Shown here one piece after another: positions 26,511-55,925 of a stretch of 64,000 bases of DNA (its first letter is position 1; the number at the start of each line of letters is the position of its first letter). The position numbers and the translations under genes are program-made. Below the pieces are notes generated by a model that saw nothing but the letters and a program-made list of their open reading frames with translations, did no database searches and had not been told where the DNA came from. Source of the stretch: Thalia democratica (taxonomy: Eukaryota); assembly GCA_965202585.1 (NCBI GenBank), contig OZ241828.1, forward strand, positions 4,464,001-4,528,000, written 5' to 3'.

Positions 26511-27212
26511 TTATTTTTGATGAAAACGTAAATGTTTGTTCCTATTTGAACTACTTGCGAATCTTTTATCACAAACATCACATACAAATGGTCTATCTCC
26601 TGTATGAAGTCTGATGTGACAAACTAAAGTTGATTTTTGCGCAAATCTTCTACCACAAACATCACATCCAAATGGTCTATCATCATTGTGAATTCTGATG
26701 TGATTGTTTAAACTTGATTTATGTGAAAACTTCTTCTTGCATGTATCACATTGATTAGGCTTTTCTTTAGTATGAGTCAACATGTGGCGTTTTAATGCAT
26801 TTTTTTGAGCAAACCTTTTTTCACAAACTTCACATTGAAAATCTTTTTTACCGCTATGTATCAACATATGTCTTGTCAAGTTACTTTTTCTGTTAAAATA
26901 TTTGTCACACTGTCCACATTTAAATGGTTTATCATCAGTATGAACTACTGCATGTTGTTTTAAATGACCTCATCTTGCAAAGCATCTTTTACAAACATCA
27001 CATTGATAAATCTTCAAACCTGAATGAGTGAGCTCATGTTGTTTCAAATTACCTTTTTTCGTAAACCTCCTATCACAATCATCACATTTCGAAGGTTTTT
27101 CACTAGTATGAATTCTTTTGTGGTTAGTCAGTTTTGAATTAAACTTAAAACATTTTCCACAAATTTCACAAAAATATTGCTTTTTTTCATTTGAAGTCTG
27201 AGTAGTAATCAT
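26511..27212 (-). pseudogene. C2H2 zinc-finger gene, 8 fingers, single in-frame TGA in finger 3 (ZF locus 5)
   Basis: ORFs 26970..27233 and 26511..26879 are in the same frame, separated only by TGA at 26970-26972 (FAR-stop-GHLKQH). The [11 protein letters not shown] start at 27212 is shared with locus 13. Confidence 0.85.
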
Positions 27213-27596
27213 GCTTAAAAATACAAAATGCATTGTTTATTGATAAACCCATGAATTAATAAAAAACTTTATGTTTAGTTACATATATTTTATTCAGTAT
27301 CGGACCTTGGTAAAACTTTTTAATATAAAACATTAGTGTTAGAATAGATTTAAGATTAGTCAGTTTTTATAGAATACACAATGTGTGGTTATAAATCAAG
27401 ATAAATACTTATTTTAAGTGTATTTTTTTAGAATTCAATAAAAAGATTGAAATACTACTTTTTATTGTGAAAACTATATCAATAGAATATATAATTTTTT
27501 TTTCTTTTTGTTGTGTTAAATAAATATTTATAAAGACTAACAGACTATAAATCATAACTAAAATATAAATGAGCTTGCATTAGTTTTTATTTTTGA
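27213..27596. repeat. 5' flank shared with ZF locus 13 (55926-56311)
   Basis: Colinear similarity from aaaatacaaa through tttatg-ttagttaca, aaacatta-tgttagaata and aaatcaagata to cttgcatta-tttttatttt. Confidence 0.8.
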
Positions 27597-28536
27597 TTAA
27601 TGAAAAGTGTAAATTTAACAAAAACGCTTTGTTGTCAACAGAAATTTATTTACTTGATACAGAAAGTTACTTAGATAGTACTATATTTTTAGAGAATTTA
27701 AACATATGTACTAGTTTTACTTACTTACTTAAGATAAAGCAGTAACTGTTAATTTGAATTATCTTGGTAAAGATTTGAATAGTTAAACTTAGTTTTTAAT
27801 GAAATTGTGTCGCACTGTTTACAATTTAGTTTCCTAAAACTTTACTCTGTGAAGAAAGTTTTTTATAATATACAACGTTGAATATAAAAAAATAGTTGTT
27901 AGCATTATACATTAATATTCTAGTTTGATATATTTATTAATATTAAATGTTCTTTTAATTCATACCAATAGAAAAAAATATACAGTTTGCATTTTTAATA
28001 TTTTGGAAAAAAGACGACAAATAAATGTTTAATCAACACTTAATGTACTTATAATAATTTGAAAGTAGTATGTTTTAATTTGTAAACATAATCTAATCTA
28101 AAATAAAATAAAAACTGTTTAAAATAATTTAACTTCAAAAGATATTCTTAATATTGTTTTTTAAAAATAAAATTTATTTAAAGTTGTTTTTAGAGTTGTT
28201 TAATTTAAAATACTTCAATTTATTTTTGTGAACTTGCAAGGGTTTACTACGATTAAAAAAACTTGTACCAATATTTTTTAAAAAAACATTTTAATAATTG
28301 CATATACATTGAACGCGACTAACTATCAACTTATTAATAGATAGACACACTTATTAATAACTTTGTTTTATGTAGTTCGAATTAAAAATACTAATGTATA
28401 ACACAGTTTTTAAAACAAAGCCAATATCTCAACGCAATAAAATCTTAAACCAAATTAGAATTTTGTTTATAACAGAAGTAATGAAATTTTTTTTCTAGTG
28501 TTTTTAGATATTTGCAAAATATTTAAACAATACTCT

Positions 28537-31500
28537 AAGTGTTTGAAGTCAGACAGTTTAAAACAGGAAATACAATATAATAAACTAACTATAAAAAATT
28601 AGTAAAATTTGACAAATTTGCTAAAAAACTAATTGTATAATTTAAAAACTTGTTAAAATTAAATTAAATTTAACTAAAAAAAATAAATAACATACTTTTC
28701 AATAAATTGGTATATATTTTTAACCTTAAAATACGGATAAAACCTTGCTTAGTACTATGTTTTAAATTTTATAAATAAAATAATTAAACTTTACTAATAC
28801 CTTGTTGCCGAGGTCTAAATTTTTTTTTATTTAATTAAACTGAAGCTTTTTACACTTCAATTTTTTTTAACTATTTTTTCTAAATTAGGAATACTTTGTT
28901 TTTAGTTAGTTTATGAATGTAGGAATACTTTTTGTGTTTTTTAATGTAGTTAATAAGTTTTAAAAGTAGGGTTATTTTAATTTTTTTCAGGCTCTCAATA
29001 AACTTTTAGATTTTAGATTTTATGGACTCGTTTTGGATAATTATGATATAAATTTTTTATTTATTAATACAAAATTTACAAACAATTATATTTTATACTA
29101 TTTTGTGTTAGTACTTTACTTTAGTCTATGTTTGTATTTTGAAAAACTAACAAAAAATATTTTTTATCATAACAAATCAATAAAACATTGTGACAGATAA
29201 CATAATTTAGCATGTATTAAACAAAACTTTGTGTAAAATAAATAAAACTTAAACTATTTTTAACGTTGACGTGTCTGATATTTAAAAGATTAGTTGAATT
29301 AAAACTTTTTTCCAGGTCTGTTTAATTTGTTAAGTTTTTATAGTTTTACTGAAAGAGGAAGTCATCGGGTGAAACTACTTTAGTTTACTTAGAATCATTT
29401 AAAAATGATGAAAATAGTTTAATAACTGGCTAATAAAGTTTGCTACTTCAGTACTAGACTCATAATACTTTAAATATAATCTTGAAGTTTTTCAAAAGAT
29501 CGACTTATACAATTAGATAACTAGGTAACTAAACAAACCTCAGAATTTGAGTTTATATTATTAAAATAACTTTGTTTTTACGTCAGGTTTTACTGGTCTC
29601 ACTATTTAACACTAATTATCTGTTAATGTTTTTTTTTTACTTTTTTTAACTATTTATATCAATTAATAAACTAATACACTTATATTGTTACAAAATTGCT
29701 AATCTATTATTTAACTCCGGCATATAAAACTTTATTTTAATTTACTATACAATTTTATAGGGTTTTAAACGTTTAAAGTTTTGAGTTGTTTAATTTATAT
29801 TAGATACGCGTATCCTTATTATACAGTTTAAATATTATTAATTGTATAAAACATGTTAATATTTTTTTAAGAAAAAAACGTTTATGGTTTCAATACTAAT
29901 AACATAAATCGTTTGCTAATATACTAAATACTAGTTTATAATTCAACTGAAATATGAAAACTAGTATACTTATTATTTCATTTATTAATCAAATTAGTTT
30001 TTTGGGCTTTGAATTTGTAAAAATATTTATTGTATTAAAGCGAAAGCGTTTATTATAATTTATTAAAATAATGTTTTATCAAAATAAAATAACTTTAAAG
30101 TTAAACATTTTTTTACGAAGTTGAAATTAGTTTAGTTTTTTATAAATTCTTGGGCACATGTCAATATATTAGTAATATACTTTGCTTACTATTAAATAAA
30201 AAAGCATTACAAGTAGATTTATTTAAAACTGTAAGAGTTGAACGTTACGATATTGTTCAAGTAGTAGTGTAAGCTTTTAAACTCATAAATAACAAAGTTT
30301 AATAAATTTCAATTGCCATTTACAAGTGTTTAACAGAAGAAGTTTTAATTATTGAAAAGAATATAAAACATTTTAGCCGCTTCTTTAAACTATAAATAAA
30401 AGTTTGAAGAGAAAGTTAATTACCAATGGTTTTGAAATACTTTTGTAAACATTAAATCTTGACGCAAAAGCTCTTTAAATCAATTCGCTGCAACTAGGAT
30501 AACTTATGTTGTAAACAGATTTTTTATTTTATTTAAACTCTATGTCCAGTTTGCAGCCCAGTAGGTTATAGTTCTAGAGAACTACGGTGTGGAATTTATT
30601 AGGTGAAAAACAAACATAGGTGTTAGATAATTGAGGATTTTTTACATTTTAGAGGTACAAACTTTATTGATTTAGAGTCGAACTAAAGCAAATAATCACA
30701 AAATTGTTTTTTAATTGAGATATTAAGTTCAATAATATTACTTTTATTTAGTAAAATTTAGTATAAGTTGTAACTTATCAAATGATTAAATATCTTAAAC
30801 ATTATTTTCATTAGACTACTATTCAATAAACAAAATTTAATGATAATCTTTTTAATAAAGTTTTAAACTATCTTTAAAGTTCAAAAGCTCAATACTTTTT
30901 TTTCAAACACCTCATTAAACTAACAATTTTTAAACACCAAGCTAAACAAATTTATATTTTTCTTCTTCCAATTTATAAAATGACATTAAATACAATTTTA
31001 AAGATTGTTTTACTATATAAAACAATACCATTTAAGGCTGTTTTTTTACTTAAATCTTCATCGTTTAAATTATAAAAAGTAATGTCTCCTTAAGTTTCTG
31101 TGAATAAACTTACGTATAAAATTTAATTTGAATCTAGAGATTTTTTTTTGATGAGTGTGAAGTATCTGTTCCTATTTGAACGACGTGAAAACCATTTAAA
31201 ACAAACATCACATCTAAATGGTCTATCTCCAGTGTGAATTCTAATATTATCATTTAAACTTGATTTTCGAGAAAACTTCTTTTTGCAAATATCACATTTA
31301 TATAGTTTTGCTTTAGTGTGAACCAACATATGTTGTTTTAATTGGCTTTTTTGATTAAAATTCTTCTCACATAAATCACAGTGAAAGTCTTTCTTACCAC
31401 TATGAATCAACATGTGTCTTGTCAAGCTTTTTATCAGAGCAAAACTTTTGTCACACTCTTCACATTTAAACGGTTTATCATCAGTATGAACTATTTTATG

Positions 31501-31758
31501 ACGTTTCAAATTACCTCTCTGTGCAAAACATCTTTTACAAACATCAGATTTATACATCTTCAATCCAGAATGAGTTGATTGATGTTGGGTCAAATTACTC
31601 TTCCATTTAAAACTTTTATCACATATATCACAATTATATGGTTTTTCACCAGTATGAACTTTTTTGTGACAAATAAGTAATGAATTACGATTAAAAAATT
31701 TCCCAAAAGTTTTACAAATATGATGCTTTTTATTATGCAAAGTTGTAGCAATATTCAT
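28537..31758. repeat. Segmental duplication unit (3' flank plus ZF locus 6), paralogous to 50401-53871
   Basis: Shared ordered anchors: aagtgtttgaagtcag, cttgttgccgaggtctaaa, tatgaatgtagga, aaaagatcgacttatacaattagataactaggtaact, aacgtttatggttt-aatactaataacataaatcgt, aaaactgtaagagttga-cgttacgatattgttc. Confidence 0.9.
31123..31758 (-). pseudogene. Open but degenerate C2H2 zinc-finger ORF, probably a pseudogene (ZF locus 6)
   Basis: 211-aa ORF, but finger 1 is CxxF, finger 3 has Cys-to-Ser, finger 6 has His-to-Asn, and finger 7 has His-to-Tyr plus a terminal frameshift. The upstream acceptor reads CTG where locus 4 has CAG. Confidence 0.65.
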
Positions 31759-32889
31759 AATTTAAAATCAGAAATATCTTTTTGAAAAACTTTTTACATT
31801 ACTAATAGTTATTTATATTAATAAAGAAGATAAGCTACATACAGTTACGATAGTTAAAATAGATTCAACAAAAAATGTTTAACTTAGTATTTTAATTTGA
31901 TAATGGCTAATTATATGTCGATACTGTAGTCATATGTGGTATCAGAAAAGCAAATGTTGTGTTGTAATTAAAACTCGTAAATATGAAATTACGTCATTAA
32001 TTACATAGCTTATTGTTAAAAGATAAAAGTATGATGTAACATTGATTTTTAAAAGATTTTACTTTTTTATTTCTCAAAAACTGTTGTGCTTACGATAAAA
32101 AAAACTAGCCTTTTAGTTTATAGTAAAATGTTTATAGTAAAATGTTTAGTGTTTTAAAATAAGGTAACTACCAACATTACAACATTGTATTGATAAAGGT
32201 TGATCAAAAAACTCGACTAAGTATTTATACTTAATCTTGTAACTATTAAATATAAAACCAGAGTTTACTATGATTTGACAATTACAGTCAAAAAATCACA
32301 TACTTTTCTAAAATAACCTCACGTTAAATGTTCTTTTAGCGATAAGTAAAGATAAGTATTCTAATTAAAGCTTATATTCTTTCATATTTAAAATACAAAC
32401 ACTATTTAAATAAAAACATCTAGCCTCAAAATCTGAATTTTTACGTTTTTAATTGTGATTGTAGCTGATGTGAGTAATTGCTGATACTGATTAACGATAT
32501 CATTTACTGCTTGATTTTTAACTATAAATGATCAATACTTTTAAACAAAATAGATACTGTAGTTTGTGATAAGGTTAAGATTGCTAACCTTTCTTTATCA
32601 CGTACTTTATAATTTTGTTTTTAATTTTTAATCAAATGTTATAAGTGTTTTAGAAACTTTTTTACTTTTTTACTTACTTAATTTTTTTGAAACTTTTATT
32701 AAATATTTCTTAAGAACACTTTTTTATTACAATCTATGTGTATATTTAGATTTTATTTTAGCATACAAGCTAATTAATAGTTATAAAACAGGAAATAGTT
32801 TATATAATACAAAACTAATACTTGTAAACTCACTATTTTAAAAGCACAGCGTTGGAAAAGTGTTAAGTTTAATCTATTATTATATTTAC

Positions 32890-32891
<2 letters not shown>

Positions 32892-32926
<35 letters not shown>
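32892..32926. repeat. (TA)n microsatellite
   Basis: Perfect alternating AT run of 35 bp. Confidence 0.95.
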
Positions 32927-32928
<2 letters not shown>

Positions 32929-33965
32929 TTATGGTTATAGATAGTAAATTTAATAATGTTCGTTGTTACTAATAGTTAAGGAGTTAAAACCATAGGCAAA
33001 CTAATGCTAAATTTTTAAAAACATTAATATATTATATATAAATTTTTCTAAAAAAATCTTTTTCAAAAACACAACACATTATGAACTAATTAAAAGTTTA
33101 ACAAAAATTAAAATTTAGGTTATTGTGTTGGAAACAATTCTTTTCATTGAATAAGTGTTTCTAAACTTACTAGCTTAGTAGCATATTAAAATATTACCAT
33201 AGGTGATTTACTATACTTAATATTTTTACAACTCATCGTGTTTACGTATGTTTATTTACTAGTTAATCTATTTTTTATTTATCGTTTTATAAGCTATAAC
33301 TACAACAATGATTGAATAGATTTTCAGCATTAAATATAATTTTACTTACGACAGTTGTAGTAAAATACTTTTTGCACAACAAGGATAACTACTATTTGTT
33401 TACTTAAACTATATTAATTGTTTTGATACATCTAAAAGTTATTAAATTATACAGCCGAAAAATCCGCTAAATAAAAAGCTTATACTAATATTTTATTCTA
33501 AGACACTTTATGTTTTATGTGAACGTTAAATAATTAAATACTTTTATTTTTTTAAATTCTTAAACACTTCAAATAGGTTTTTATATAGTGACTAAGTTAA
33601 AAGAAAAAAGTAAAACCGTTTATTACGATTATAATTTTTAAAATAAAGTAAAATATTTTGTCAACAACATGTTAGAACATACTTTACACGTTGATCGTTA
33701 TTACGAAAATGAAAAAAAAAATTCTTAGCTCTTTGTTAGAAAATTAAAAAAATGTGAAAACGGTTAACTTACTAATTATAAAAAGAAAACTAAAACATGC
33801 ACTAAAACTTTTTAATAAAAATTAAATTTTTTTTCATATCTAAAAGTGATTTAAAGACTTCTGTACTGTAAAATTAAATAGCTTTTATTTCTAATAAACT
33901 TTAAAGAAATGTTAACTGTTTTACCGAATTAAAAGTATTACGATTTATAGCTGCTATAATAATTT
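32925..33965. repeat. Upstream module, copy C, about 1.2-2.2 kb 5' of ZF locus 6
   Basis: Colinear with 5325-6335 (same anchors as copy B). Confidence 0.85.
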
Positions 33966-36491
33966 TTCCTTCAAAAATAATAAAAATAATAATACATAAA
34001 ACGTTTATGATTATGACTTTATTTCAAAAATAATTTATAAATGCAATAACTAGACATCCTTTCAACGCCCTATTAAACTAAATAATTTTTTTCTCGACAA
34101 TATTCTACAAGTTTTGTTGATGCTTATAGCTGAAACTGGGGTCACTAATTTTTTTTTCGCAGAAATAGAATTCAAGCCATCCAATTGTACAAAAACCAAA
34201 TTCAATAAATTTCATCCAAAGTTTTGAAGCTATCACTGGATGGTAATTAAGAAAACAACTTTGTCTTGTTTTTTTACAGAACAATTCTACTAAAATAAGA
34301 AAAAAAGTTCATCTCTAAAATTAATAGGGCAATATTAAAATATAAATTGTTGTAGATAAAAGTTTAAACAGAATAAATTATCTGCTTAACTACAAATAAT
34401 ATACAGGTGCATAAAACAGAATAGTTGCGTATTTTTTATTTTTTTATATTATTCACCTTTTAAACTAAAATTGTATAAATGCTTCACAGCTTCGTTTACT
34501 TTAGTACTTGATATTTGTAATTGCTTTTGATTTAGCATGATACATAAATGTTTCATTTTTAAAATAACTTAAATTTTTAATTTTCTTTTTTTTTGTCATT
34601 TGCAAAGGGTAAGTTGTAGTTATTTTTTTTATCTAAAATTAGCTAAATTAATCTACAACTAATCAAATGATCAATAACGTATACAAGTCAAAATAAAAAT
34701 CAAACTTCTTAAAAATTTACAGCCATTAAGCTAGTTTTACAGGTCAGTAGACAATAGTTTTCAATTTTTAAAGTATTTTAAAACATATACATCCAAATGT
34801 ATACAAACAAAATTAGATAATAACTATCGGATGTTTTAAGTTAATTGTTGTTTTCATCTAAAGTTCTAAAGCTATCATTAGACGGTTATTAAAAAGTAAG
34901 TTGTATTGTTTATTTACGACCAATTCTGCTAAACTAAAAAATTAGGTTTATTTGTGATATTTAGAGGACAACATTAAATAACATTTTTAAGTTTGTTAAA
35001 GAATCGTTGTAAGAAAAATTTAGATAAAAATTTAGATTTTAAAAACTTCTACAGCAAGTTATATTTGATTAACAACAATACATCTAAGGAAAAAAATAAA
35101 AGAGCACATACCAAAATGTGTAGAAATCTTTGCCTTTCAGATAAGAAATATGATATACCGGTCAAGATTTTAATGCATCTAAACATTCATCTATAGCAAA
35201 ACACTTATTGAGTAATTCAACTTGTGCAAACAGTTAGAATACAAATAGGCTTAAAATTATAAACATGTAGTAATGTTTTTGATTTGATTAAATTAGAAGC
35301 CAATTGTATTTAATTAAGGAAACCTGTTTTATGTAAGCAAAAAAATTTGACCATACTATTTCTTTATTTTCGTAACGCTTTATAAAAATTGTTTTTATTT
35401 TGTTTTATTTTACTGCAAATCAAATATAACGTAAGTAAACTAATATGAAGTTGAATTTCTAGATGATTCGAATTTAACCAGTCTGGCTAGCCACACGTTG
35501 ATGAACAATTTTTCAAGTAAATGCCAAGATTTGAAAGAACTATTCTTACAAAGAAAAATCATATGTTTGCAATTCAACGAGAAATCGCAGCAATACAAAG
35601 AAATCTCAAACAATTGATGAAAAAAAAAAACTATCTTAGATACAATTAATGGTAAAATTAGTATTATACAGTTGGGACTGAAGAAAAAGTTTAATAGTAA
35701 CTAAAAATGGTAAGTTACATACTTACATATTAGAAGTTCAAACATGAATAGTAAGGGTAAACTAAATATTAATTCTTCATTTCATAACCCTCAAATTTGT
35801 AATGCTCACCAATTTAAAAGTGTTCATGTAATAGTTATCAATAATATTCATTTATTTTTTTTATAGCATGTAAAAATTACTATTACGTTTGATGAAGTTT
35901 TATTAGTATTAACTAAGAATAAACAAATTAAAATCATAATTAAACAAAACATTACCAAAAGTTTTAGTCAATCCTTAATAGTTTAAAAAGTTATACAATT
36001 TTAGAAATACATATTTAGCAAAGTATATTATAAAGATAACTATTAAATGTTCAACAAGTCAATTTGATGCATATAAAGTTAGATTAACTTTAAAACTTTC
36101 AAACCACTTAACTTAAAAACGACAAAAATATCATGGGTTTAATACAAATCATCATAAATTATATATCATCATAGTTAAAATATAAAAATAAAGTTATGGT
36201 AACAATGATACACAATACAAATTATAATTTTCAGCATGGCAGAAAGTTATGATATCAAAAAAAATTATAGTACAAAAAATTAAAAGTATAGCTTTTTTAT
36301 ATAATTAAAAATGAATACTACTTTAAATCATTTTGTGTCTATGGCTAAAACGACTTGAATTAGCTGGTTTTTCAGATATAAAAATAACATTACTTTAGAC
36401 TTACAGCTTAGCAAGCACTAGTTAATACTAACTGCATTTATCCTAAAAAACCTTAAAAAAATAAATAAGTGATAAATTTCATAAATAGTTA

Positions 36492-37121
36492 TTAATTTTG
36501 ATGAATACGCAAATGTCTGATTCTATGGGATTGGTCTGAAAATCTTCTACCACAAAAATCACACCTAAATGGTCTATCTCCAGTGTGAATTCTAATGTGA
36601 GTGTTTAAACTTGATTTCCGTGAAAACTTCTTCTTGCAAACTTCACATTCATGATGCTTTTCTTTTGTGTGAGTCAACATGTGCTGTGTCAAAACGTATT
36701 TCAGAGCAAACATTTTTTGACAGACATCACATTGAAAATCTTTCTTACCACTATGGATCAACATGTGTCTTGTCAAGCTATATTTAAAAGCAAAACATTT
36801 ATTACACTGTTCACATTCAAAGGGCTTATCATCAGTATGAACTATTGCATGGCGTTTTAGATGACTTCTTCGCGAAAAACATCTTTTGCAAACATCACAT
36901 TGATAAATCTTCAAACCGGAATGAGTAACTTGATGTATTTTTAAGTGAGCTTTTCTTTTAAAACGTTTAGCACAAACATCACAGCTATAAGGTCTTTCAT
37001 CTGAATGAACTCTTTTGTGTCTAACTAATGATAATTTTGAATCAAAAATTTTTTTACAATTATCACATGAAACTAGCTTTTTACCGTTAGATAACTTTAA
37101 CCATTTGTGATCAGTATCCAT
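36492..37121 (-). CDS. C2H2 zinc-finger protein, 7 fingers, intact (ZF locus 7)
   Basis: 209-aa ORF with 7 complete fingers and family linkers. Acceptor ctttcaacag 9 nt upstream of the ATG. Confidence 0.94.
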   Translation of the reverse strand: MDTDHKWLKLSNGKKLVSCDNCKKIFDSKLSLVRHKRVHSDERPYSCDVCAKRFKRKAHLKIHQVTHSGLKIYQCDVCKRCFSRRSHLKRHAIVHTDDKPFECEQCNKCFAFKYSLTRHMLIHSGKKDFQCDVCQKMFALKYVLTQHMLTHTKEKHHECEVCKKKFSRKSSLNTHIRIHTGDRPFRCDFCGRRFSDQSHRIRHLRIHQN

Positions 37122-40485: not shown

Positions 40486-40981
40486 TTAAATGAAACTTTT
40501 AGAAATTGAAAAAATAATGGCTTGTATAAATTAATAAGACCTAAATTCCTTTTTATATTTATTTTTTACTTTATTTAACTTTTTGATATACGGTCTCTTA
40601 AAGACGTTTAAGAATTTGAATTGATATAATTTACTTTGTCCGAATTGTCATGTAACTAATTATTAAAAACCTTGAACTACTAGAATAGTTTTATTCTCTC
40701 AACAAACATCAAGTTAAAAAGTAAACTAAATTTTTAAAACAAATACATTCAAGTTCTAAACAGTTTTAGAATATAAACAAAGATATTTAAAGTTGAAACA
40801 TTTATTTAGTCAGATGAATAAATATAAATTCAGTCTTATAATTCTATTTAATTTATAACTGGCACTTTTATAAAATAACTAATATTCAAATAAAAAAAAG
40901 TAATTAATGAAACTTTACAATGTGTGTCATAAATTAATCTACAAACTAATAACTCTTTGAGTGTTGAATTTACAAGTTTTG

Positions 40982-41290
40982 TTAATAGGTACGCAGATGC
41001 TTGTTCCTATTAGAACTTTGTGTAAATCTTCTCCCACAAACACTACATCCAAAAGGTCTATCTTCAGTATGAATTCTAAGGTAAACAACTAAATTTGATT
41101 TATGTAAAAATGTTTTCTTGCAAATGCTACATTCATAAGGGTTTACTTTAGTGTGAGTCAACATGTGTTGTTTTAGATTACCATTTAGAGTAAATTTCTT
41201 CTGACAAACATAACACTGGAAATCTTTCCTACCTTTATGTATCAACATGTGTAATTTCAAACTAACTTTTTAAGTAAAACGTTTATCAAA
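40982..41290 (-). pseudogene. 5'-truncated C2H2 zinc-finger pseudogene (ZF locus 9)
   Basis: Begins mid finger 4 (DKRFT-stop-KVSLKLHMLIH) and retains fingers 5-7, with His-to-Tyr in fingers 6 and 7. No homology further upstream. Confidence 0.85.
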
Positions 41291-42240: not shown

Positions 42241-42888
42241 TCATATAGAGTCGTTATTTTTTTGATGATGAGTACGCAAATGAGTGTTTCTATGTGAACT
42301 CTGAGTAAATCGTCTTCCACATACTTCACATCCAAATGGTCTATCTCCAGTGTGAATTCTTATATGCTGGTTTAAACTTGATCTTAGAGAAAACGTTCTC
42401 ATGCAAACTTTACATTCATGAGGCTTTTCTTTAGTATGAGTTACCATGTGTTGATTTAGATGAGCTTTTTGAGAAAACTTCATCTGACAAACTTCACATT
42501 GATAATCTTTCCTACCACTATGTGTCAACATGTGTGTTTTTAAATAATGTTTTAGAGTAAAACATTTGTCACACTGTTCACATTTATGAGCTTTATAATC
42601 ATTATGAACAACAGAATGCCGTTTTAAACTACTTCTTCGTGAAAAACATCTTTTACAAACATCACATTGATAAATCTTCAAACCAGAATGAGTAAGTTGA
42701 TGTTGTGTTAAATTACATTTTTGTGCAAAACTTTTGTCACAATCATCGCATTTGTAAGGTTTTTCTCCGGAATGAATTCTTTTGTGATATATCAGGTCAA
42801 AATTTCTTTTGAACACTTTCCCACAAGTTTCACAAACAAGTTGGTTTTTATGTTCTAATAATTCTAAGTCACCTTTAGTGTTATCCAT
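42241..42888 (-). CDS. C2H2 zinc-finger protein, 7 fingers, intact (ZF locus 10)
   Basis: 215-aa ORF with 7 complete fingers and a short extra tail (NNDSI). Acceptor gtattcag 25 nt upstream of the ATG. Confidence 0.94.
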   Translation of the reverse strand: MDNTKGDLELLEHKNQLVCETCGKVFKRNFDLIYHKRIHSGEKPYKCDDCDKSFAQKCNLTQHQLTHSGLKIYQCDVCKRCFSRRSSLKRHSVVHNDYKAHKCEQCDKCFTLKHYLKTHMLTHSGRKDYQCEVCQMKFSQKAHLNQHMVTHTKEKPHECKVCMRTFSLRSSLNQHIRIHTGDRPFGCEVCGRRFTQSSHRNTHLRTHHQKNNDSI

Positions 42889-45290: not shown

Positions 45291-46002
45291 TTTGTTAGCT
45301 CAAATAAAAAACTGTAATAGGAAAAGTTTTTTGGTAAAACTTTACAACTAGAATATTACTTGTTAATTACAGTCACCTCTTGAGAACCTACGCACATTTT
45401 GTCTACAGTACACTTATAAAACATTGCCTATTCCTAAAAAATTACTATTAGTTTGTTTATTTATCTTTTTTTGTGTATAACATTTTTTTTGAATTTTGAT
45501 TTGTTATAAAACACTTATTATAAAATATTTAGTACTAGTCATAAGACATTTTTCAAGTGTTCAGCTACTGTTTCATCTACTAGAAAAATATTAAGAAACC
45601 TTAATTACTTCTCAAATAGTTGTTAAAATTTAAAAAGACAAGAAACATAGCTAAACTTAATAAATAACAACTTAAGTTGGAGTAATTTATATATACAATT
45701 TATCTATAATTAGTTTTGAGCGATAAGTATTCACAACCAAAAAAGTTATTAAAAAGTTAAAAAAGCAGTCATCTAAAATAAGTGACATATTTGAAGCATT
45801 GTTTTCTGTAAACATACTAATTGATGAAATAAACAGTATTTCTTCTAACTTATCGTATTACTGTAGTGAAAACTTTAACTAAAACTATAATATTAATCAT
45901 TTTTTTATGTAAACTTATACACAGTAAAATCAAAACTTGATTAAATATATACTCGACAAATCACATAAACAATTATGTTTCTATTCGTGATCAGTTTTAT
46001 TT

Positions 46003-46621
46003 TTAATGAATACGCAAATGTTTGTTGAACTTGCTGTAAATCTTTTTCCACAAACATCACAACCGAACGGTCTATCCCCAGTATGAATTCGAATATGTTT
46101 GTTTAAGTGAGATTTTTGTGAAAACTTCTTTCTGCAAGTGTTACATTCATGAGGCTAATCTTTGGTATGAATCAACATGTGCCGTTTTAGACTACTATTT
46201 TGACCAAATTTCTTTTCACAAACATCACACTGAAAATCTTTTTTACCACTATGTATTAACATGTGTTGTGTCAAACCTCATTTAAATGCAAAGTATTTAT
46301 CACACTGTTCACATTTAAATGTTTTATTGTCAGTGTGAACTATGACATGCTGTTTTAAATGACTTCTTCGTGAAAAACATCTTTTGCATACGTCACATTG
46401 ATAAATCTTCAAACCAGAATGATTTAATTGATGTCTTGTTAAATCACCTTTTCTAGCAAAATTCTTGTCACAAATTTCACAACTAAAAGGTTTTTCACCT
46501 GAATGCAGACTTTGTGAGCAACCAATGCAGACTTAAATTTAAAACTGTTTTTACAAGTTTCACAAACATACTGCCTAGAAGCATTTAAATTTTTTGAGCT
46601 AGTTTGATCACTATTTACCAT
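46003..46621 (-). pseudogene. C2H2 zinc-finger pseudogene (ZF locus 11)
   Basis: Starts MVNSDQTSSK. Frameshift at about 46502-46512, TGA at 46278-46280, TAG at 46155-46157, a deletion in the terminal helix, and TAA at the Gln of HQK. Confidence 0.92.
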
Positions 46622-49298
46622 TATTACTTCATAACAAACAAACTGAAACTATTATAATTAGTCGTTAAAAAAACAAATATAAATAAATTTTAGACATAAA
46701 ATAAAAATTAAAGTATTTTGTAGTTAACTCAAAACGATATTTTGAAACTTTACTTAAGTTATACATTTATTTTTTATAAGATTCTTTCTTTGAATTTAAG
46801 TAACTTAACATGATGTTACTGCTAAAAAAATATAATTTTTTGATAATAAATTGTTTTAAGAATTTTAATTGTATGTCAATAACCTCATTATTCTAAAATC
46901 TAATAATTGAAAACAGTGTTACTTTCTTTTGTTTAAACTAAGATTTAAGTTTTTCAATGGCTTTTAATTCCTTGTCTTTTAAACGTTTATGTCGAAAAAA
47001 AGAATTTGTTTTAAAGATGCTTTAATTGTAAGTATTATAAAATATTTACGTGTTGTTTTGCTAATATAGAAAAATTATTTTTATATCTATAATCCTAAAA
47101 TATTTTCTATAAATGATAAACTTAACTTAAAAACTGAATTTAGAAGAATAAAAATTTTTAAATCAGTTGATATGTTATATTTAATTTTGTTTAAAAAACC
47201 TTTAAAATCTATTTTTAAATTTTAAACTAACATGCAATACAGAAATTAAACAAACATTATAGTTGGGCTATTTCAGGGAAGTAGCTAGCTCAAAAAAGTT
47301 ACGAATCTGCAAAATAAAAATCAAGAATAATGTGTGATGACGTCATAACGGGAATAAAGTAGTTTTAACTACCTTTAATTTTATATGAAATTGTGCAGTT
47401 TTGTTAAAAGTTTAAAATAAATAGAATGTTAAAGTATAATAAAAAATTGATTACCAGGCAAGTTGTACTGCTATTGACCCCCTATAGTTATTATTGTGTT
47501 GAACTTTAATGAGCCTATAAAACGTTTCATTAAAAAAAAATATTGATTAAGAAACTAACGTTAATAGTATTACTGATAGGCCTTAAATATATAACTTTAA
47601 AAACAGTTTCTCCACTTCAGAAAAGATTTGCAAAAATTTTTGCTTTTATTGATTTAAAAATCAAAAATTTTAAGAGTTAAATAAAAAACAAAGAGGATAT
47701 AAAATAAAACAGTTCGCAACATTAGATAAAATTTAGATGTACAACTACTTTATTTTGTCAAAAATAACTCACATAGAACGGAAGAATACACGTCTTTGTA
47801 AATGTTATTACTAGCTTTGGTAGCATAAAGAGTTGAGCTGTAAAAAAAGAATAAAACATTTTGTTATTAAAATAAAATTCTTAAATAGAAGTTGTAAACA
47901 GAATCAAACTTTTTTTTTTACAAAACAAACTTGTTAAATAAAACAACTCAGTTAAAAGACACAAACCTTGAATGTTAAACATTAATATTTTTTAGATACA
48001 ATGTGAAACATATAAATAAATTCAAACATAAAGGTTTTTAAACATAAAATATATTATTTTTTTTTTTTTAAACTTGTTATGAATTTATAATACAACTATA
48101 AACTAGTTAAAAAAATGTTACTAATTTAATCTTTATAATCTTAGATTTAATAAGTTATATAAAATTTATTTTAAAATTTTTTATCATTTATCGAACATAA
48201 ATTAAAGAATTAAACTGATATTTTTTTCAAATTTAGTAAACCACTCTAAAATTTATAAACTTATTTTAAAACAACAGATACAATCCATATTCTTTATACA
48301 TTTAAAGAAAATATATAACACAAAAATCTTTATATTGTAAACAACAATGCTTGTAGAAAAATAAAATTTACAGTAATATTTAAAAACAAGTTGAAACAAA
48401 CTTTGTATTTTACATAGTTGTCTGAAAACATCATTGAAAAAGCTTATATCTTGAAATACTTATCTAGAACTCATTGTAACAAACTACACTTGAGTTTGAT
48501 TGACTTTGTTAATAGCTTTGAGTTTAAATGGCATCAAGTGGATGGTTTTACTTTCAAATGATATTTGCATAATTTTAACCTTAGTAAACTTAACTTTTAA
48601 ACTTAGTTTGAAAAATCTGTGAAACAACTAGATTTGTTAAAATCCACACATAGTGTACCAAGTTTACAGTAGTAATACAAATAAAACTCAAAAACAATTT
48701 TCAAAATGTAAAGCCAACTAGAAAATACAAATGTACTAACTTAAGGTTTTATAATTCTGTTAACTACTTAAAAATTGTTAATATAAAGATGAAAAAAAAC
48801 AGAGATAATGAAAAACCTTTGAAAGTTGGGAATAAAACCAAAAACTCTGAAAAAATTTTAATTTTCATTTAATAAAACAATATGCATAGAAAACAAACTT
48901 ATTGTAAACAAATGATATAATAATACAAGTAAAATAGGTATTAACAACAGCTCTACCCTATGACCAACACCAGTTCCAGGATTTTGTTTTTGAATTTATC
49001 TTCTTATTTTTGAAATAAGACTAACTTTTCAAATTTATCAATGTTTTTTTTACAAAACTGGTTATAAAATAAAAATTCATTAAAACTAGCTAGCAAAATC
49101 TCATTCAAAAATGGAAAAATATCTGTTATGACATTATTAACAAACCTAAAATGTCCTTATTTTTTATAGATAAAAAAACCATACTGAGTTAACCTGAGTT
49201 CAAATATAAAAATCTAAATATCATAGAGTTATACAGAATACTTTGAGTGTTTTGGCTACAATGTACAATTTAAATCTTTTAACTTTGCTAAAAAATAC

Positions 49299-49480
49299 AA
49301 TAAAAACTTTAACTAAGGTAAGCATTTATAAAATCTTAAAACCAGTTTTAATTAAAAAATAAAGTTCTAAAATATAATAAAAACATTATAATTTGTTTAT
49401 ATTAATGTTGAAAAATAAAAACTTTAACTTACTTAGCATTTATAAAATCTTTGAAACAAGTTTTAATTAAAAAATAAAAT
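49299..49480. repeat. Local direct duplication, about 65-bp unit at 115-bp spacing
   Basis: aataaaaactttaact ... agcatttataaaatctt ... agttttaattaaaaaataaa occurs at 49299 and 49414. Confidence 0.8.
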
Positions 49481-50400
49481 CTGTTTATATTATTCTTAAA
49501 AAAATGTTTATTATTCAGTTTTTTAACTTTTCGTTTTGTTGCAAGCTATTTGTCGTATTGTGTTAGTTTTTCTGATTTAATAAATTATAATTTTCTTGAT
49601 AAAACTTCAGGAAATAAAATTATTATAATTTTTTAAAAAGTTTTTCATTTTTGTATATTTGTCAACCACAGGGATTTAATCTTAAAACGTTCAACTCAGA
49701 GAGTCAATTTGGTTTATAACAAAGGTTAATTCTTCATGTTACTTTACTTTTAGGTTCATCTAATCTAAAGATTATCTTTTCATATATCTTCTATCTGTAT
49801 TTGCTCTTTTGTAAGACAAAAAGTGTAAGTTTCAAAAAATGTAAAGTTCTATTTGACTCACAATAAACCTTTCAATAGTACAAAACTTACTTTTTTTTTT
49901 TATTCTCTCACATGATTTAAACCAAATCTACAGCCTCAAAATTGGTTTTTTTACAATAGCTTGCTTTAGATAATAGATTTTTACACCAAGCTATTTGTAT
50001 ACAATTAAATGTATTCAATTTGTTCAATGTTTACGACACTAAAAGTGCTAGAGAATCCGTAAAAATAAAATTATTTCTCAAGAGTGCAAAACTAAGTATA
50101 AACGAATACTTGAAGTTAAAGAAACAAGGTCTTAAAAGCTGAGTAATCGAAAGAAAAGCGAGTTTTTTCGTACAAACTTTTACGTTTCTGTAGATTTGCA
50201 CAAACGTACCAAGCTACGTATCTGGGCTATTTTATTAACATAAACGCTTCCTGAAATGGCAAAAAAATAAAAAGATCTTAAGCATAGTTTAATGGCAGTT
50301 TTTTTAGTTAGAAGGCAATTGCTTGTTTAGTTTTAAAAGGGGGTTTTTATATAATATATTTTTTGTAAACCCTGGTTTAATTTGTTACCCAAACTAAATT

Positions 50401-53400
50401 AAGTGTTTGAAGTCAGGCAGTTTAAAATAGAAAATACTACATAATAAACTTAATATAAAAATTTAATAAAACTTCACAATATTGTTATAAAATTAATTTT
50501 GTAATCAAGAAATTTATTAAAACTAGTCAGATTATCGTTATATATTTTTTACTTTTAAAATATTTTTACTACTTACTTTATGTTTTACTTTTTATTAATA
50601 AAAAATTTAAACTTTTTAGATATCTTGTTGCCGAGGTCTAAAAAGTTTTTTTGTTGTTTAATCAAACTGAAGTTTTTTACATAATAAATTTTTTTTAAAC
50701 TATTTTTTTAAGTAAATTGTATTTGTTTTTAATTAAGCTATGAATGTAGGAGTTTTAATTTTGGTTTTTTAATGTTATTGATAAACTTTATTAGCGTTCT
50801 ACTAAATGCGTTTAATTTTAAGGTTTACAATACAACTTTTAACTTAAGTTTTTGATCACTTGCTTTAGATATGTATTATATATATTTTCTTATTTATTAA
50901 TACTAACATTCTGAAGAATTATATTTTCTAGTATTCTTTTGTTAATTCTTTAATTTAGCCTATGTTTATACTTTGAAAAATTCAAGTTTGTTTTTTGATA
51001 TAATAAATCGATTAAAAAACTGTGACGAAAGACAAATTTTAACATGTATTAACTAAAACTTATAGAGCTATAAAAGGTAAACAATTATTATTAGTTTTCA
51101 TGATGGTAAAATATCATTCACAAATACTTTATAAAGACTTATATTTTTTGACTTAAAATGTATATTTTTAGAAGTTTAGAAAACTTAGTGTACTATAGAA
51201 ATAAAAACTTAAAGTATCTTTAAACCTCATGTTTGTGATATGTAAAAGATCAGTTAAATAAAAACATTTTCGAGGTATAAGGGGAATTCTTTAGGTGAAA
51301 CTTCATTAATTAACTCAATAACGAATTTATATCCATAACGATGAAAAGAGCTTAGTAGCTGTCTAAAAAGGTCTACTACTTAAGTATTAGACTCATTACT
51401 TTTTATATATAATCATGTAGTTTTTTAAAAGATCGACTTATACAATTAGATAACTAGGTAACTTAACAAACCTAAGCGTTTTTATTTATGTTTTTTAAAT
51501 AGTTTCGTTTTACTTTGGGTTTCACTAGTCTCAAACTATTTACTTTTTCAACAATTATACTTTTTTGAACTAGTTATAACAAATAATGAACTAATACTTT
51601 TAAAAGGTTACAATAATATTTATTTTGTTATTAACGTCGGCATTAAAAATTAGTTGTTAAATAACAGTAGATCTATTTAGAAATTTAACATTTTATATAT
51701 CGATTTGTTTATTAAATATGAGAAAGGCATAATAAAAAGAAAATTCGTAATATAGAGTTTAAATAGAATTAAGTTGTGTAGATCATCTACAATAATATTT
51801 ATTTTAAACAACGTTTATGGTTTTAATACTAATAACATAAATCGTTAAAAATGAACTAAAAACCAGTTAATAAAGGCTATTTGTAAAAAAAATGTATTGT
51901 ATTTAAGCGAAAACGTTATTGATAATTAAGTAATTTTTTCTATCAAAACTAAATAAGTTTAATTATAGCTTTTTTTAAGAATTCGTTTAATTTTAAATTC
52001 GTTTTGTTGATATTATTAATATACTTAATATTTTATTAAATAAAGCAGCATTACACGTAGATTGATTAAAAACTGTAAGAGTTGAGCGTTACGATATTGT
52101 TCGAGTGATAATGTAAGTTTTAAAACTCATAAATAACAAAGTTTAATTGGTTTCAATACCCATATACAAGTTTTTAAAAAATAAATTTTTAATTATTCAA
52201 AAAAACATGAAAAAAAACATGAAAAAAAACAGTATTTAATGAAAAATTTCGAATATTTTAACCACCTTTTAAAACTATGAAATATTAATTAAATGAAAAT
52301 GTTATTTAATAATGTTTTTTCAAGTACTTTTGTAAACATTAAAACTTGACCTACGCAATATTCAAATCAACTCGCGCCAACTAGTACAATTTCTGTTGTA
52401 GACGAAATTTAAACTTTATTTGAAACTCATTACTCTTTCCTTTTTGACTTTCATTTCCAAAAAAAATTATTTGTCCGGTTGGTCGGCAATTACGAGGAAA
52501 GATATTAATTATAGAGGTCTAAATTGTGAAATTTATTAGATGATTAACGAACATAGGTACTAAAAAATTTAGTACTTAATATATTTTGATGTTATAAACT
52601 TTATTAACTACATGTCGAATTAAAGCATATAATCATGTATTTGATTTTCATTTAACATAATAATTTAAAAATTATATAGTTATATTTTTGTTAATAACGA
52701 AAATAACTTAAAAATTACTTTTACTACACATGTTTTCACTATCCACAAAGTTAATAATGTTTTTTTTTTTGTTACAGTTTTAAACTACCTCATATTTTCA
52801 TTAACACAATTAGTTTTACTTTTCAAACATCACATTTAATCATGATTAATTAATTTATCTCAAACCCCAAACTATACAAGTTTTTATTTTCACCCCAATT
52901 TAAGTTTTAATCCATGTTTATGAAGTGACATAAAGCACAACTTTAAAGTCTTTTTTTACTGTAGAAAAACAAAAATATTTAAAGTTGTTCTTTTACACAA
53001 GTTAACATCATGTTTAATGTAAAAAGTAATGTTTCCTAAGGCTTCTGTGTAAGTTTTTACAAAATACATTAAATTTGAAACCAAAGAGTTTTTATCTTTG
53101 ATTAGTATGAAGTGTATGTTCCTGTTTGAACGACGTGAAAACTATTTGAAACAAACATCTTATCAAAATGGTCTATCACCAGCGTGAATTGTAATATGAT
53201 CATTTAAATTTGATTTTAAACTCCTTCTTGCAAAAACCACATTCATGAGGATTTGCTTTAGTGTGAAACAACATGTGTTGTTTTAAATGGCTTTTTGATT
53301 AAGATTAAAGATAAAACAAATGGTCTATCACCAGTGTTGTTTCTACTATGATTCTAATGTGTTCGTTTAAACTTGATTTGAGTGAAAACCTCTTGTTGCA

Positions 53401-53871
53401 AATGTCACATTTATGAGACCTATTTTTTGGATAGAGTAAACATGTGGTATTTCAAATGATTTTTTTGTTTAAAATGCTTCTCAAAAACTTCACACTGAAA
53501 ATCTTTCTTACCACTATGTATCAACATGTGTGTTGTTAAGTTTATTTTTAAAATTAAAACCTTTGTCACAAAATTCACAACTTAGTGGTTTGTCATCAAT
53601 GTAAACTAATGTAAAGGCTTTTAAATGAGTTCTATGAAAAAAAAACATTTTATAAACATCAAATTTATATATATTTAATCCAGAATGAGTTAACTGATGT
53701 TGGGTCAAAATATTAATCCTTTTGAAAGATTTTTCACAGATATCAAAACTGAATGGTTTTACACCAGTATGATCTCTTCGTGCCTAATAAGCAATGAATT
53801 CAATTAAAAAAATTTCCTACAAATTTCACAGACATGAAGCTTTTTATGATCAAAGTTGTAGCAGGATTCAT
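50401..53871. repeat. Segmental duplication unit (3' flank plus ZF locus 12), paralogous to 28537-31758
   Basis: Same ordered anchors as 28537-31758. The gene ends also match (MNPATT vs MNIATT; gaacgacgtgaaaac). Confidence 0.9.
53092..53871 (-). pseudogene. Heavily decayed C2H2 zinc-finger pseudogene with internal duplication (ZF locus 12)
   Basis: Multiple frameshifts and ligand losses. The finger 5-6-GDRPF segment occurs twice (about 53150-53310 and 53318-53480). Confidence 0.88.
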
Positions 53872-55307
53872 AATTGAAAATAGGCAAATAGATAATAAAA
53901 ATATTTCTTTTAGTTTTTTATTAAATACTGGGTAACAGCATCAAACAATTTTTTTATATTATAAGAATAAAAGCAGATAATGAAAAATGCAAAAACGACA
54001 CCTTGTGTGGTTCAAAACTATAATATATACTTATATTAACTAAAAAACTTATAAAACTAAACAGAATAAATATTAATAGTGTTAAAAAAAAAGAGAAAAG
54101 CACTTGACTGTTTTGCTGCAAACTATGTCAACAAAACTATTATTAAATTCTTTATTTTATTAAAGTTCGTTCAAGTCTTATTGTTTACTGAATACAATAA
54201 CACCTATTTTAGAAAATTAATTATTCATTAAATGGTCTTATTATTTTTCGACTGTTGGGGTATTTAGAGTTTTAATTCTTTAAGATAGCTTTGTAATTAG
54301 AAAGTAATTAATATTAATCATAAACGATAATTGATCACATACTGTTAGAAAAAGTAGATTAATCTTCAACTTAAACTTAAATTTTTTGATTTTAGATGAA
54401 GCAGTAACTGTTTATTTAATTGATCAGTTTGGATAAACATTTGTGTCAATAAAGTAATAGTTTTAGTAATTATTTTCTTACTAAGTTTAAAGTTGAGCTA
54501 CGTCTGTTATAAAGACGACTGTTGTTTAGGTAAATAAAGCGAAATGAAAAAAAATTTTTTTTTTTATTATCTAGTTGTTTAAAACTTTAAAAACCAATAA
54601 GTAATAAAGAAAATTTCTGTGCTTAATTTAAGATTTACATTAAAAAATGAAGTATTTCGTGATTAAAGTCTAAATTTAAATACAAATTATTAATAATTAA
54701 TTTAGAAGTTTTAATATATTGTCGTATTAACAAATTTTAAAGGTATATTTATTAAGCTTGATAATGCAGATCAAAATCAAACAAAATTATAACTATAATA
54801 TAAAACAGAATTAGAACTTCAGATTATCTTTCTAACAAGTAGTTAGATACTTGTGTTTAAATATTAAAAAAAAATAATAATTTTCAACCAAAACTTTCAA
54901 AATTTGAGTCCATTGAAAGGTGTATGTTCTTGTCATCTTTTTACTTTATGTTTGTTAACAATGTTGTACTACTATTAAAACAGAACTACGAAAGTTTAAG
55001 TTATATGTACGAAAGCTTCGTTAAAATTACAATGTTACACAATTATTAAATATATATATGGTTAAAAAAATATACATCAAACAATTTTTAGTAAAATTAA
55101 AGCATTATAATCATAACAAACTTATACATCTGAAAATAAATAACATTAAGTTTAGTTTAATGTGTCATTACTAAAACAATTGCAGCTATATAATATATCT
55201 GAATTTATAAATAGCATAACTTAGGAGCTTAATCAGCACTAAAACTAACACACTGCATTCGTAAACCGCTTATAGAAAAATAAAATTATCGATTCGATAA
55301 ATAAGTT

Positions 55308-55925
55308 TTATTTTTGATGGTTACGCGTATGTCTGTTCCTATGAGATCTATCTGAAAATCTTCTTCCACAAAGATCACATCCAAATGGTCTATCTCCAGT
55401 ATGAATTCTAATGTGAGTGTTTAAACTTGATTTCTGTGAAAACTTTTTCTTGCAAGTATCACATTCATGGGGCTTTTCTTTAGTGTGAGTCAACATATGG
55501 GATTTTAGATAAGCTTTTTGAGCAAAGTTCTTCTGACAAACATCACACTTTAAATCTTTCCTACCACTATGTATCGACATGTGTATTGTCAAGTTACCTT
55601 TACGGTTAAAACATTTGTCACACTGTTTGCATTTAAATGGTTTATTATCAGTATGAACTATTGCATGCTGTTTTAAATTATATCTTCGTGCAAAACATCT
55701 TTTGCAAACGTCACATTGATAAATCTTCAAAACGGAATGAGTAAGTTGATGTTGTGTTAAACTACCTTTTTGTGCAAAACTTTTATCACAAACATCACAT
55801 TTGAAAGGTTTTTCACCAGTATGAATTACTTTATGATTAGTCAGTTTTGAATTAAACTTAAAATTTTTTCCACAAGTTTCACAAAAGTATTGCTTTTTTT
55901 CATTTGAAGTCTGAGTAGTTATCAT
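55308..55925 (-). CDS. C2H2 zinc-finger protein, 7 fingers, intact (ZF locus 13)
   Basis: ORF 55308..55964. Likely start MITTQ at 55925, preceded by ttttcaag-c. Seven complete fingers. Confidence 0.93.
   Translation of the reverse strand: MITTQTSNEKKQYFCETCGKNFKFNSKLTNHKVIHTGEKPFKCDVCDKSFAQKGSLTQHQLTHSVLKIYQCDVCKRCFARRYNLKQHAIVHTDNKPFKCKQCDKCFNRKGNLTIHMSIHSGRKDLKCDVCQKNFAQKAYLKSHMLTHTKEKPHECDTCKKKFSQKSSLNTHIRIHTGDRPFGCDLCGRRFSDRSHRNRHTRNHQK

Follow-up and report, generated by a model that had tools for sequence, protein, structure and literature searches.

Lineage-specific expansions of poly-zinc-finger genes were described by Emerson and Thomas 2009, with adaptive change at helix positions -1, +3 and +6 (PMC2604467), and a conserved scaffold that carries variable contact residues has been documented for poly-zinc-finger expansions generally (PMC2604467, PMC10547256). 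For the cyprinid FiNZ and insect ZAD zinc-finger genes, this pattern has been described as one that does not depend on the accessory domain (PMC10547256, PMC7655104). In Ciona, by contrast, poly-zinc-finger genes were reported to number only ~100, with no sign of a large expansion (PMC2604467).

The array that we describe here, which lies in a 64-kb window (the whole stretch of DNA analysed), resembles the expansions of Emerson and Thomas 2009 in several respects: paralogs with canonical C-X2-C-X12-H-X3-H fingers are clustered in tandem, scaffold and linkers are kept while replacements focus on the base-specifying helix positions, and fingers are gained or lost and genes converted. It differs from them in that a site-model omega above 1 is marginal here, where copies are few and old, and in that the databases searched hold no close relative (at most 52% identity). 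Like the tetrapod KRAB zinc-finger proteins, the array forms a clustered, fast-turnover repertoire with hypervariable contacts, and the ZNF568 finger array is its best structure match. Unlike these proteins, its members have no KRAB domain, a leader of just 13-17 residues, only 7-8 fingers and four non-canonical linkers out of six. With the cyprinid FiNZ and insect ZAD genes it shares an independent, lineage-restricted tandem expansion with variable contacts, but it has no ZAD domain, no space for a FiNZ-type N-terminal domain and no conserved exon within 4.5 kb upstream.

A large tandem family of C2H2 zinc-finger genes

The window (22% GC, N count 0) contains 14 recognisable C2H2 zinc-finger loci and two weak fragments, all of them on the minus strand (Table 1). 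Five loci are intact, a single stop interrupts each of two others, and the remainder are decayed. The copies are laid out as a conserved ATG, a leader of 13-17 variable residues, seven fingers of the canonical type and, two codons past the last of these, a conserved stop (HQK-stop), and the positions of both start and stop are kept in the intact copies. A locus comprises 7-8 units of 28 codons, in which the C-X2-C-X12-H-X3-H motif is joined by 7-residue linkers; the non-canonical ones read SGLKIYQ, TDDKPFK, SGKKDFQ and TKEKPHE.

Summed contig depth reaches ~25,000 on the finger-coding parts vs ~50 on unique flank, which implies that family members number in the hundreds genome-wide. With 14 loci in 64 kb and hundreds of copies implied by depth, the array is a slice of a large, lineage-specific tandem C2H2 expansion, and its variable reading residues on a conserved scaffold are the classical pattern for such families. 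Second-organism contigs were dropped as a source of polymorphism; thousands of paralogous contigs stack on the coding parts. A transposon-borne ORF was ruled out because the flanks are not common to the copies, loci 5 and 13 excepted.

Table 1. Zinc-finger loci and associated features in the 64-kb window.
Feature	Position	Strand	Description
Locus 1	3655..4368	-	Intact, 8 fingers; ORF spans conserved ATG to conserved stop
Locus 1 extra finger	3727-3810	-	Chimera of last finger and finger 6 (84-nt tandem repeat, segment identities)
Locus 2	12376..12980	-	Pseudogene: first-linker frameshift, finger 6 Cys lost, last finger destroyed
Locus 3	17715..18332	-	Seven intact fingers; TAG at codon 5 past conserved ATG
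Locus 4	22578..23206	-	Pseudogene; frameshift and several stops
Locus 5	26511..27212	-	8 fingers; TGA at 26970-26972 (helix +1 of finger 3)
Locus 5 extra finger	26583-26666	-	
Locus 5 5' flank	27213..27593	-	~75% identical to locus 13 flank
Locus 6	31123..31758	-	Open frame, but zinc ligand lost in three fingers and last finger frameshifted; decaying
Locus 7	36492..37121	-	7-finger gene, intact
Locus 8	40976..41284	-	Degenerate fragment, fingers 5-7
Locus 9	42241..42888	-	7-finger gene, intact
Locus 10	45990..46607	-	Pseudogene; frameshifts and stops
Further copy	52989..53777	-	Heavily decayed
Locus 13	55308..55925	-	Intact 7-finger gene; 205 aa from conserved ATG
Locus 13 5' flank	55926..56309	-	Common to locus 5
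Locus 14	57396..58028	-	7-finger gene, intact
Locus 15	61403..61678	-	3' remnant, fingers 6-7; ends at GC-rich block; recent duplicate of locus 14

Among Pfam families, the copies matched zf-C2H2 and zf-H2C2_2 (E-values 1e-36 to 1e-60), and the few other families that scored did so under their curated cut-offs. KRAB (PF01352; four intact proteins searched), ZAD (PF07776), SCAN and BTB gave no Pfam match, no conserved coding piece or exon was found within 4.5 kb upstream of the loci, and the 13-17 residues ahead of finger 1 leave no room for a FiNZ N-terminal domain. The other ORFs of at least 70 aa in the window had no match in Pfam, and searching the window for RNA genes in Rfam likewise returned none. 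A protein word search found no close sequence relative above 52% identity, a profile-based locus search recovered generic zinc-finger genes alone (at most 48% identity), and an exact search of metagenome contigs with a degenerate DNA pattern that encodes [16 protein letters not shown] gave no match. The solved structures nearest to the locus 13 protein are those of DNA-bound ZNF568, Aart, CTCF and PRDM9, with the ZNF568 finger array ranking best. Together with the polar composition of the contact residues described below, this likeness to DNA-bound structures suggests that the encoded proteins bind DNA in a sequence-specific manner through helix positions -1, +2, +3 and +6.

Replacements concentrate at the base-contact positions across the family

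We took as contact positions the four canonical base-contact positions of the helix, namely -1, +2, +3 and +6. The original prediction that nearly every copy carries a different helix on near-invariant linkers is borne out: 48 of the 49 helices in the seven best copies are distinct within their finger position, and 7 of 11 loci have exactly the same linker sequence, [15 protein letters not shown]. Whether contact sites differ from other positions had been set as a test, and they do so strongly (likelihood-ratio p 1e-23 to 1e-40). Omega is 0.006-0.04 for zinc and core positions, 0.30-0.39 for other positions and 1.3-1.7 for contact positions, and the gap between the latter two persists when each finger is given its own tree, which allows for recombination. 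Taken position by position, omega is 1.83 at +6, 1.67 at -1, 1.56 at +3 and 1.18 at +2, the next highest value being 0.81 and helix positions +1 and +5 standing at 0.55 and 0.39; the per-position likelihood ratios, computed with fixed branches, are anti-conservative (15.2 for the pooled contact class vs 8.3 when fully re-optimised) and serve for ranking only. The chance that exactly these four positions would top the 22 non-structural ones is ~1 in 7,300.

At the other extreme, the 28 zinc-ligand codons of seven intact and near-intact copies show zero replacements (dN = 0) at a dS of ~0.9. The contact residues themselves are 78% polar, where intergenic base composition predicts 42% (p = 2e-24), and 14% hydrophobic, where 54% would be expected. 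Such an excess of polar residues over what mutation bias would give indicates that the contact sites are not free to drift, and it favours selection indirectly.

Whether contact omega exceeds 1 depends on the synonymous rate

The same sites had been read as evidence for diversifying selection on the target sequence, for which dN/dS above 1 had been named as a test. Measured against the gene-wide synonymous rate, this holds (omega 1.3-2.2, p = 0.002-0.036), but against the contact codons' own rate it does not (0.8-1.3, not different from 1). Contact codons change synonymously at 1.5-2.0 times the rate of other codons. An unsupervised comparison of M1a and M2a gave a non-significant p = 0.11 with seven loci and a marginal p = 0.023 with five, flagging two sites only, both of them contact sites in finger 1, and the pooled Nei-Gojobori omega is 1.02-1.13. 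All selection tests draw on 5-7 usable sequences at a pairwise dS of ~0.6, for which power is low and saturation a concern. Diversifying selection on the target sequence is partly supported; it is suggested, not proven.

Loci 5 and 13 are related in their 5' part

The original prediction started from loci 5 and 13, which it took for close paralogs. Much of what it described is exact: the helix strings of both loci, including the TGA in finger 3, the common leader and finger-1 helix FNSKLTN, the count of 13 helix differences across fingers 2-6 with 11 at -1, +2, +3 or +6, and the shared 5' flank, which spans 381 and 384 nt at ~75% identity and is confined to these two loci. Over their full length, however, the two are not close (74.5% amino-acid and ~81% nucleotide identity). 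Locus 5 is near locus 13 only across the flank, the leader and the first two fingers, and it is a mosaic in which the first ~230 nt are locus-13-like and the last finger resembles that of locus 4 at 22.6 kb (max chi-square permutation p = 0.0004).

The contact concentration seen in this pair is also weaker than it appeared. Although the count of 11/13 is correct, it lies little above chance within the helix (binomial p = 0.038 vs 4/7, and p = 0.14 vs 4/6 if the invariant Leu at +4 is left out) and it ignores the other differences, 35 of the 49 amino-acid differences between the loci falling outside contact positions. Over all seven fingers, differences occur at 14/28 contact positions and at 35/119 of the remaining non-structural ones (odds ratio 2.4, p = 0.046). 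This enrichment is absent from the related 5' segment (2/8 vs 12/36) and is supplied by the rest of the two genes (12/20 vs 23/83, p = 0.009). Since locus 5 is both a pseudogene and a mosaic, the pair is a poor witness for diversifying selection.

Discussion

We consider it probable that the array belongs to a birth-and-death tandem family of small C2H2 proteins, whose repertoire is kept diverse by selection that favours novel or different specificities. The loci in the window show that new copies arise by duplication and that about half of them decay. Unequal crossover within a gene alters the number of fingers, as the chimeric extra finger shows, and recombination between copies gives rise to mosaics such as locus 5. 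Purifying selection holds the zinc-binding residues, the core of hydrophobic positions and the position-specific linkers. Replacements at the four base-reading helix positions keep pace with synonymous change or outrun it, and these positions remain within the polar set typical of DNA contacts. Each intact copy is predicted to read a distinct site of ~21 bp, and such selection may keep the repertoire diverse, as in other expanded poly-zinc-finger families.

Relaxed constraint offers a different account of the fast contact positions. Here, the folded fingers would serve a base-unspecific role, such as nucleic-acid or protein binding, and exposed helix positions would drift neutrally, which is consistent with a contact omega not different from 1 on the codons' own synonymous rate, with the pooled Nei-Gojobori values and with the non-significant M1a/M2a comparison for seven loci. 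We nevertheless regard this account as unlikely. The contact residues lie far from mutational equilibrium in both their hydrophobic and polar fractions, which indicates that many replacements at these positions are rejected, yet on balance replacements still accumulate as fast as synonymous changes. Moreover, the elevation coincides exactly with the four canonical base-contact positions and does not extend to every exposed one, as the low values at +1 and +5 attest.

Concerted evolution of the scaffold, by which gene conversion homogenises frameworks and linkers while helix codons retain an older divergence (either because conversion tracts do not reach them or because selection removes converted helices), appears rather improbable to us. 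On this account, differences would seem to cluster at contact sites although new replacements were not in excess there. Pairwise homoplasy testing gave no significant signal overall (p = 0.33, 0.03 and 0.07; 0.58-0.98 on third positions), and third-position identity reaches just 0.80 in the best-conserved segment, against a median of 0.71. The fact that this peak falls in the F2-F3 linker segment does agree with conversion, as do the mosaic structure of locus 5, the near star-like trees and the raised synonymous rate of contact codons; likewise, finger pairs with 90% or higher identity across their non-contact codons still show a contact pS of 0.36-0.49. However, multiple replacement hits can yield part of the synonymous excess at hypervariable codons, and homogenisation of the scaffold does not argue against selection for diversity, with which it can coexist. 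That the array in its entirety is decaying DNA without function, and its pattern a relic, is extremely improbable: at least seven of the 14 loci are broken or decayed and two more carry a single stop, but the strong purifying selection on the scaffold (invariant zinc ligands, structural-position omega of 0.006) and the start and stop positions kept in the intact copies already contradict it.

Under the birth-and-death reading that we prefer, the array is a further case in which DNA-reading zinc-finger genes have expanded independently within one lineage, here in the group that includes Ciona. If the copies were expressed and bound repeats, the connection of transposable elements with zinc-finger diversification would extend to a family without a recognisable effector domain. 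More speculatively, and with considerable reserve, a repertoire of hundreds of seven-finger genes that lack an effector might act in sequence-directed genome defence or repeat marking without a recruited domain, paralleling KRAB, FiNZ and ZAD proteins; the nucleotide-conserved F2-F3 linker might be a homology patch for swapping finger blocks between paralogs, such that specificities would arise by module shuffling as well as point change.

A separate observation concerns the selection tests, in which the call on positive selection for this array flips with the handling of synonymous-rate variation. That this choice decides the verdict counsels caution for similar claims.

Organization of the zinc-finger array

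A six-frame scan of the 64 kb window (GC 20-29%, zero N) identified 69 C2H2 finger units, all 69 on the minus strand, which fall into 14 recognisable loci, named here by window position, and two weak fragments in a tblastn search with the 55.3 kb protein (see table). Nucleotide alignment revealed a common plan in which a conserved ATG is followed by a variable leader of 13-17 codons and seven fingers of 28 codons, with a stop two codons past the last histidine (HQK-stop) in nearly every copy. Apart from the loci with an intact or once-interrupted frame, the remaining copies are either truncated or disrupted by frameshifts, by multiple stops or by loss of zinc ligands.

The encoded proteins match C2H2 zinc-finger families in Pfam, a search that returned no KRAB, SCAN, BTB or ZAD domain and listed few other families, all below curated cut-offs. 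Among solved structures, the closest are those of ZNF568, Aart, CTCF and PRDM9 bound to DNA. No conserved coding piece was found upstream of the loci. The array is characterized by the absence of an accessory domain, by fixed, non-canonical linkers and by an unusual last finger, in which nearly every copy has Arg instead of the otherwise invariant Leu at helix +4, with Asn next to it at +5 (S-x-R-N-x-H). The 3.7 and 26.5 kb loci carry a chimeric eighth finger, in which the first 30 nt correspond to the last finger (93% identity to that of the same gene in the 3.7 kb locus) and the rest to finger 6 (83%). This indicates that finger number changes by unequal crossover within the gene.

Features of the window
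Feature	Position	Strand	Basis or remark
Intact locus (3.7 kb)	3655-4368	-	reading frame; carries eighth finger
Intact locus	36492-37121	-	reading frame
Intact locus	42241-42888	-	reading frame
Intact locus (55.3 kb)	55308-55925	-	reading frame
Intact locus (57.4 kb)	57396-58028	-	reading frame
One-stop locus (17.7 kb)	17715-18332	-	TAG, codon 5
One-stop locus (26.5 kb)	26511-27212	-	single TGA, helix +1 of finger 3
Locus (22.6 kb)	22578-23206	-	
Locus (61.4 kb)	61403-61678	-	lacks first five fingers
Weak zinc-finger fragments	19.9 kb, 40.4 kb	-	tblastn with 55.3 kb protein
Chimeric eighth fingers	3727-3810, 26583-26666	-	last finger + finger 6
Last finger with R-N (example)	55311-55379	-	
F2-F3 linker and finger-3 hairpin	~55653-55730	-	same segment in every locus
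Minisatellite/reverse-complement array	9674-10041/11242-11295		
GC-rich block	61645-61785		about 140 nt
Similar 3' flanks (57.4, 61.4 kb)	57072-57227, 61098-61253		94% identical
Interspersed repeats, intergenic	29404-29578/51337-51511, 30166-30368/52010-52212, 5478-5683/33084-33289		79-83% identical

Base-contacting positions are the most variable in the family

We used the 55.3 kb gene as the codon frame for 11 alignable loci and classed codons by their place in the finger. The mean fraction of amino-acid differences peaks at the base-reading helix positions (-1, 0.78; +3, 0.78; +6, 0.76; +2, 0.63) and is zero at the Cys, His and Phe positions. In line with the original prediction, almost every copy carries a different helix, 48 of 49 being distinct within finger position among the seven best copies. 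Nei-Gojobori omega, pooled over the five intact copies, was 1.13 for contact, 0.46 for other non-structural, 0.01 for core and 0 for zinc-ligand codons.

Under a codon likelihood of the Muse-Gaut type, with site classes fixed and one set of branch lengths imposing one synonymous rate, contact omega was 1.73 for 5 loci (p = 0.002 versus omega = 1), 1.53 for 7 (p = 0.004) and 1.27 for 11 (p = 0.036), compared with 0.30-0.35 at other and 0.006-0.04 at structural positions. The predicted difference between contact and other finger positions is therefore clear, equal omega being rejected at p 1e-23 to 1e-40. A separate tree per finger, which allows for recombination, changed little (1.55 and 1.51; p = 0.011 and 0.004). 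Per-position omega ranks +6, -1, +3 and +2 highest, followed by helix -2 (0.81) and all others at 0.55 or below, so that the excess is restricted to canonical base-reading positions rather than all exposed helix positions.

Whether contact omega exceeds 1 depends on the synonymous yardstick

The further expectation, a contact dN/dS above 1, was borne out with the gene-wide synonymous rate but not with the contact codons' own rate, which is 1.5-2.0x higher. With their own rate, contact omega was 1.21, 0.95 and 0.80 on a single tree, 1.02 and 0.82 on per-finger trees and 1.30 and 0.99 with class-specific codon frequencies, none differing from 1. Support for the two added rate parameters is borderline, with a 2 delta lnL of 2-3 (5 loci), 5-7 (7 loci, p = 0.04-0.08) and 7.0 (11 loci, p = 0.03). 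Class-specific frequencies with a shared synonymous flux instead raised contact omega to 1.9-2.2 (p about 1e-5), so the outcome is decided wholly by the choice of yardstick. The unsupervised comparison standard in the field, M1a versus M2a, returned p = 0.11 with 7 loci and p = 0.023 with 5, and flagged just two sites, both in finger 1 (-1 and +3). Even where the fingers of a pair are 90% or more identical outside contact codons, contact pN is about 0.35 and contact pS 0.36-0.49; the window copies are thus too old for the informative early phase after duplication.

S, R, Q, N and H predominate among the contact residues, which are polar or charged in 78% of cases, versus 42% expected from intergenic base composition, and hydrophobic in 14% versus 54% (p = 2e-24). 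A substantial fraction of possible replacements must therefore be rejected and, since the net rate at least equals the synonymous rate, we infer that the accepted changes were favoured. Diversifying selection on target sequence is thus partly supported, by a contact omega far above that of other positions and by the polar composition, but an omega above 1 hinges on the synonymous yardstick and positive selection at contact sites is not established.

The 26.5 kb locus is a mosaic

The original prediction centred on the 26.5 and 55.3 kb loci as close paralogs differing mainly at contact positions, an observation that we could confirm in part. All quoted helix strings read as claimed, and 11 of the 13 helix differences in fingers 2-6 fall at -1, +2, +3 or +6; the count is right, but barely above chance inside the helix (p = 0.038 versus 4/7; p = 0.14 with invariant Leu +4 excluded). 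Across all fingers, 14/28 contact and 35/119 other non-structural positions differ (odds ratio 2.4, p = 0.046), and the two loci also differ heavily outside the helices. No flanks are common to different loci except in this pair, whose 5' flanks (381 nt versus 384 nt) share ~75% identity.

The likeness does not hold throughout, as per-finger identities and maximum chi-square analysis reveal that the 26.5 kb locus, a pseudogene, is a mosaic. In the three-sequence comparison its leader and first two fingers are closest to the 55.3 kb locus (84% of informative sites), the part that follows is equidistant, and the last finger resembles that of the 22.6 kb locus (permutation p = 0.0004). The truly related 5' segment has no contact excess (2/8 versus 12/36 others); the excess lies in the remainder (12/20 versus 23/83, p = 0.009).

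A homoplasy (PHI-type) test was not significant overall, and the trees are nearly star-like. Among 16-codon windows, third-position identity is highest in the F2-F3 linker and finger-3 hairpin (0.80-0.82 versus a median of 0.71). The summed depth of contigs in public runs peaks there as well, and the mosaic breakpoint of the 26.5 kb locus lies at its edge; this segment may therefore be a homology patch for recombination. As an alternative account of the variable helices, scaffolds may have been partly homogenised between copies while helices retain older divergence, which, if true, would itself imply selection to keep helices distinct.

Extent and relatives of the family

In sequencing runs containing window DNA, contigs of 85% or higher similarity sum to a depth of about 5,000-26,000 across most finger-coding parts, versus about 50 for unique flank contigs, as would be expected from hundreds of related copies across the genome. 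The search for runs yielded none from RNA. Protein searches found no relative above 52% identity, and metagenome searches no locus above 48%.

The array fits a known kind of lineage-specific poly-zinc-finger expansion, its contact residues being likewise the most variable. In many animals, such expansions concentrate replacements and omega above 1 at -1, +3 and +6, with a caveat on gene conversion, and Ciona is reported to have only about 100 poly-zinc-finger genes (Emerson and Thomas, PMC2604467). Wells et al. (PMC10547256) found base-contacting residues to be highly variable across several metazoans and zebrafish FiNZ genes to be under positive selection, and concluded that ZNF and TE content are linked irrespective of the accessory domain.

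Other features of the window

In public runs, intergenic DNA in 55.2-61.2 kb, the only stretch examined, is covered 5-25x more deeply than unique contigs, indicating that the spacers are repetitive too, and interspersed repeats occur between the loci. A minisatellite built from 17/34/52-nt units, in which GTCACTTTGGCACAG and ACGGTGC are frequent, lies in a region of 27-29% GC versus about 22% elsewhere; with a short array of its reverse-complement unit 1.2 kb away, it may delimit a mobile element. Judging from their 3' flanks, the 57.4 and 61.4 kb loci are the youngest duplicates of the window, and one member is already truncated. A GC-rich block, in which a palindromic GGCCCGCG core occurs six or seven times, coincides exactly with the point at which the first five fingers of the 61.4 kb locus are lost, and looks like an insertion or breakpoint that truncated the gene.
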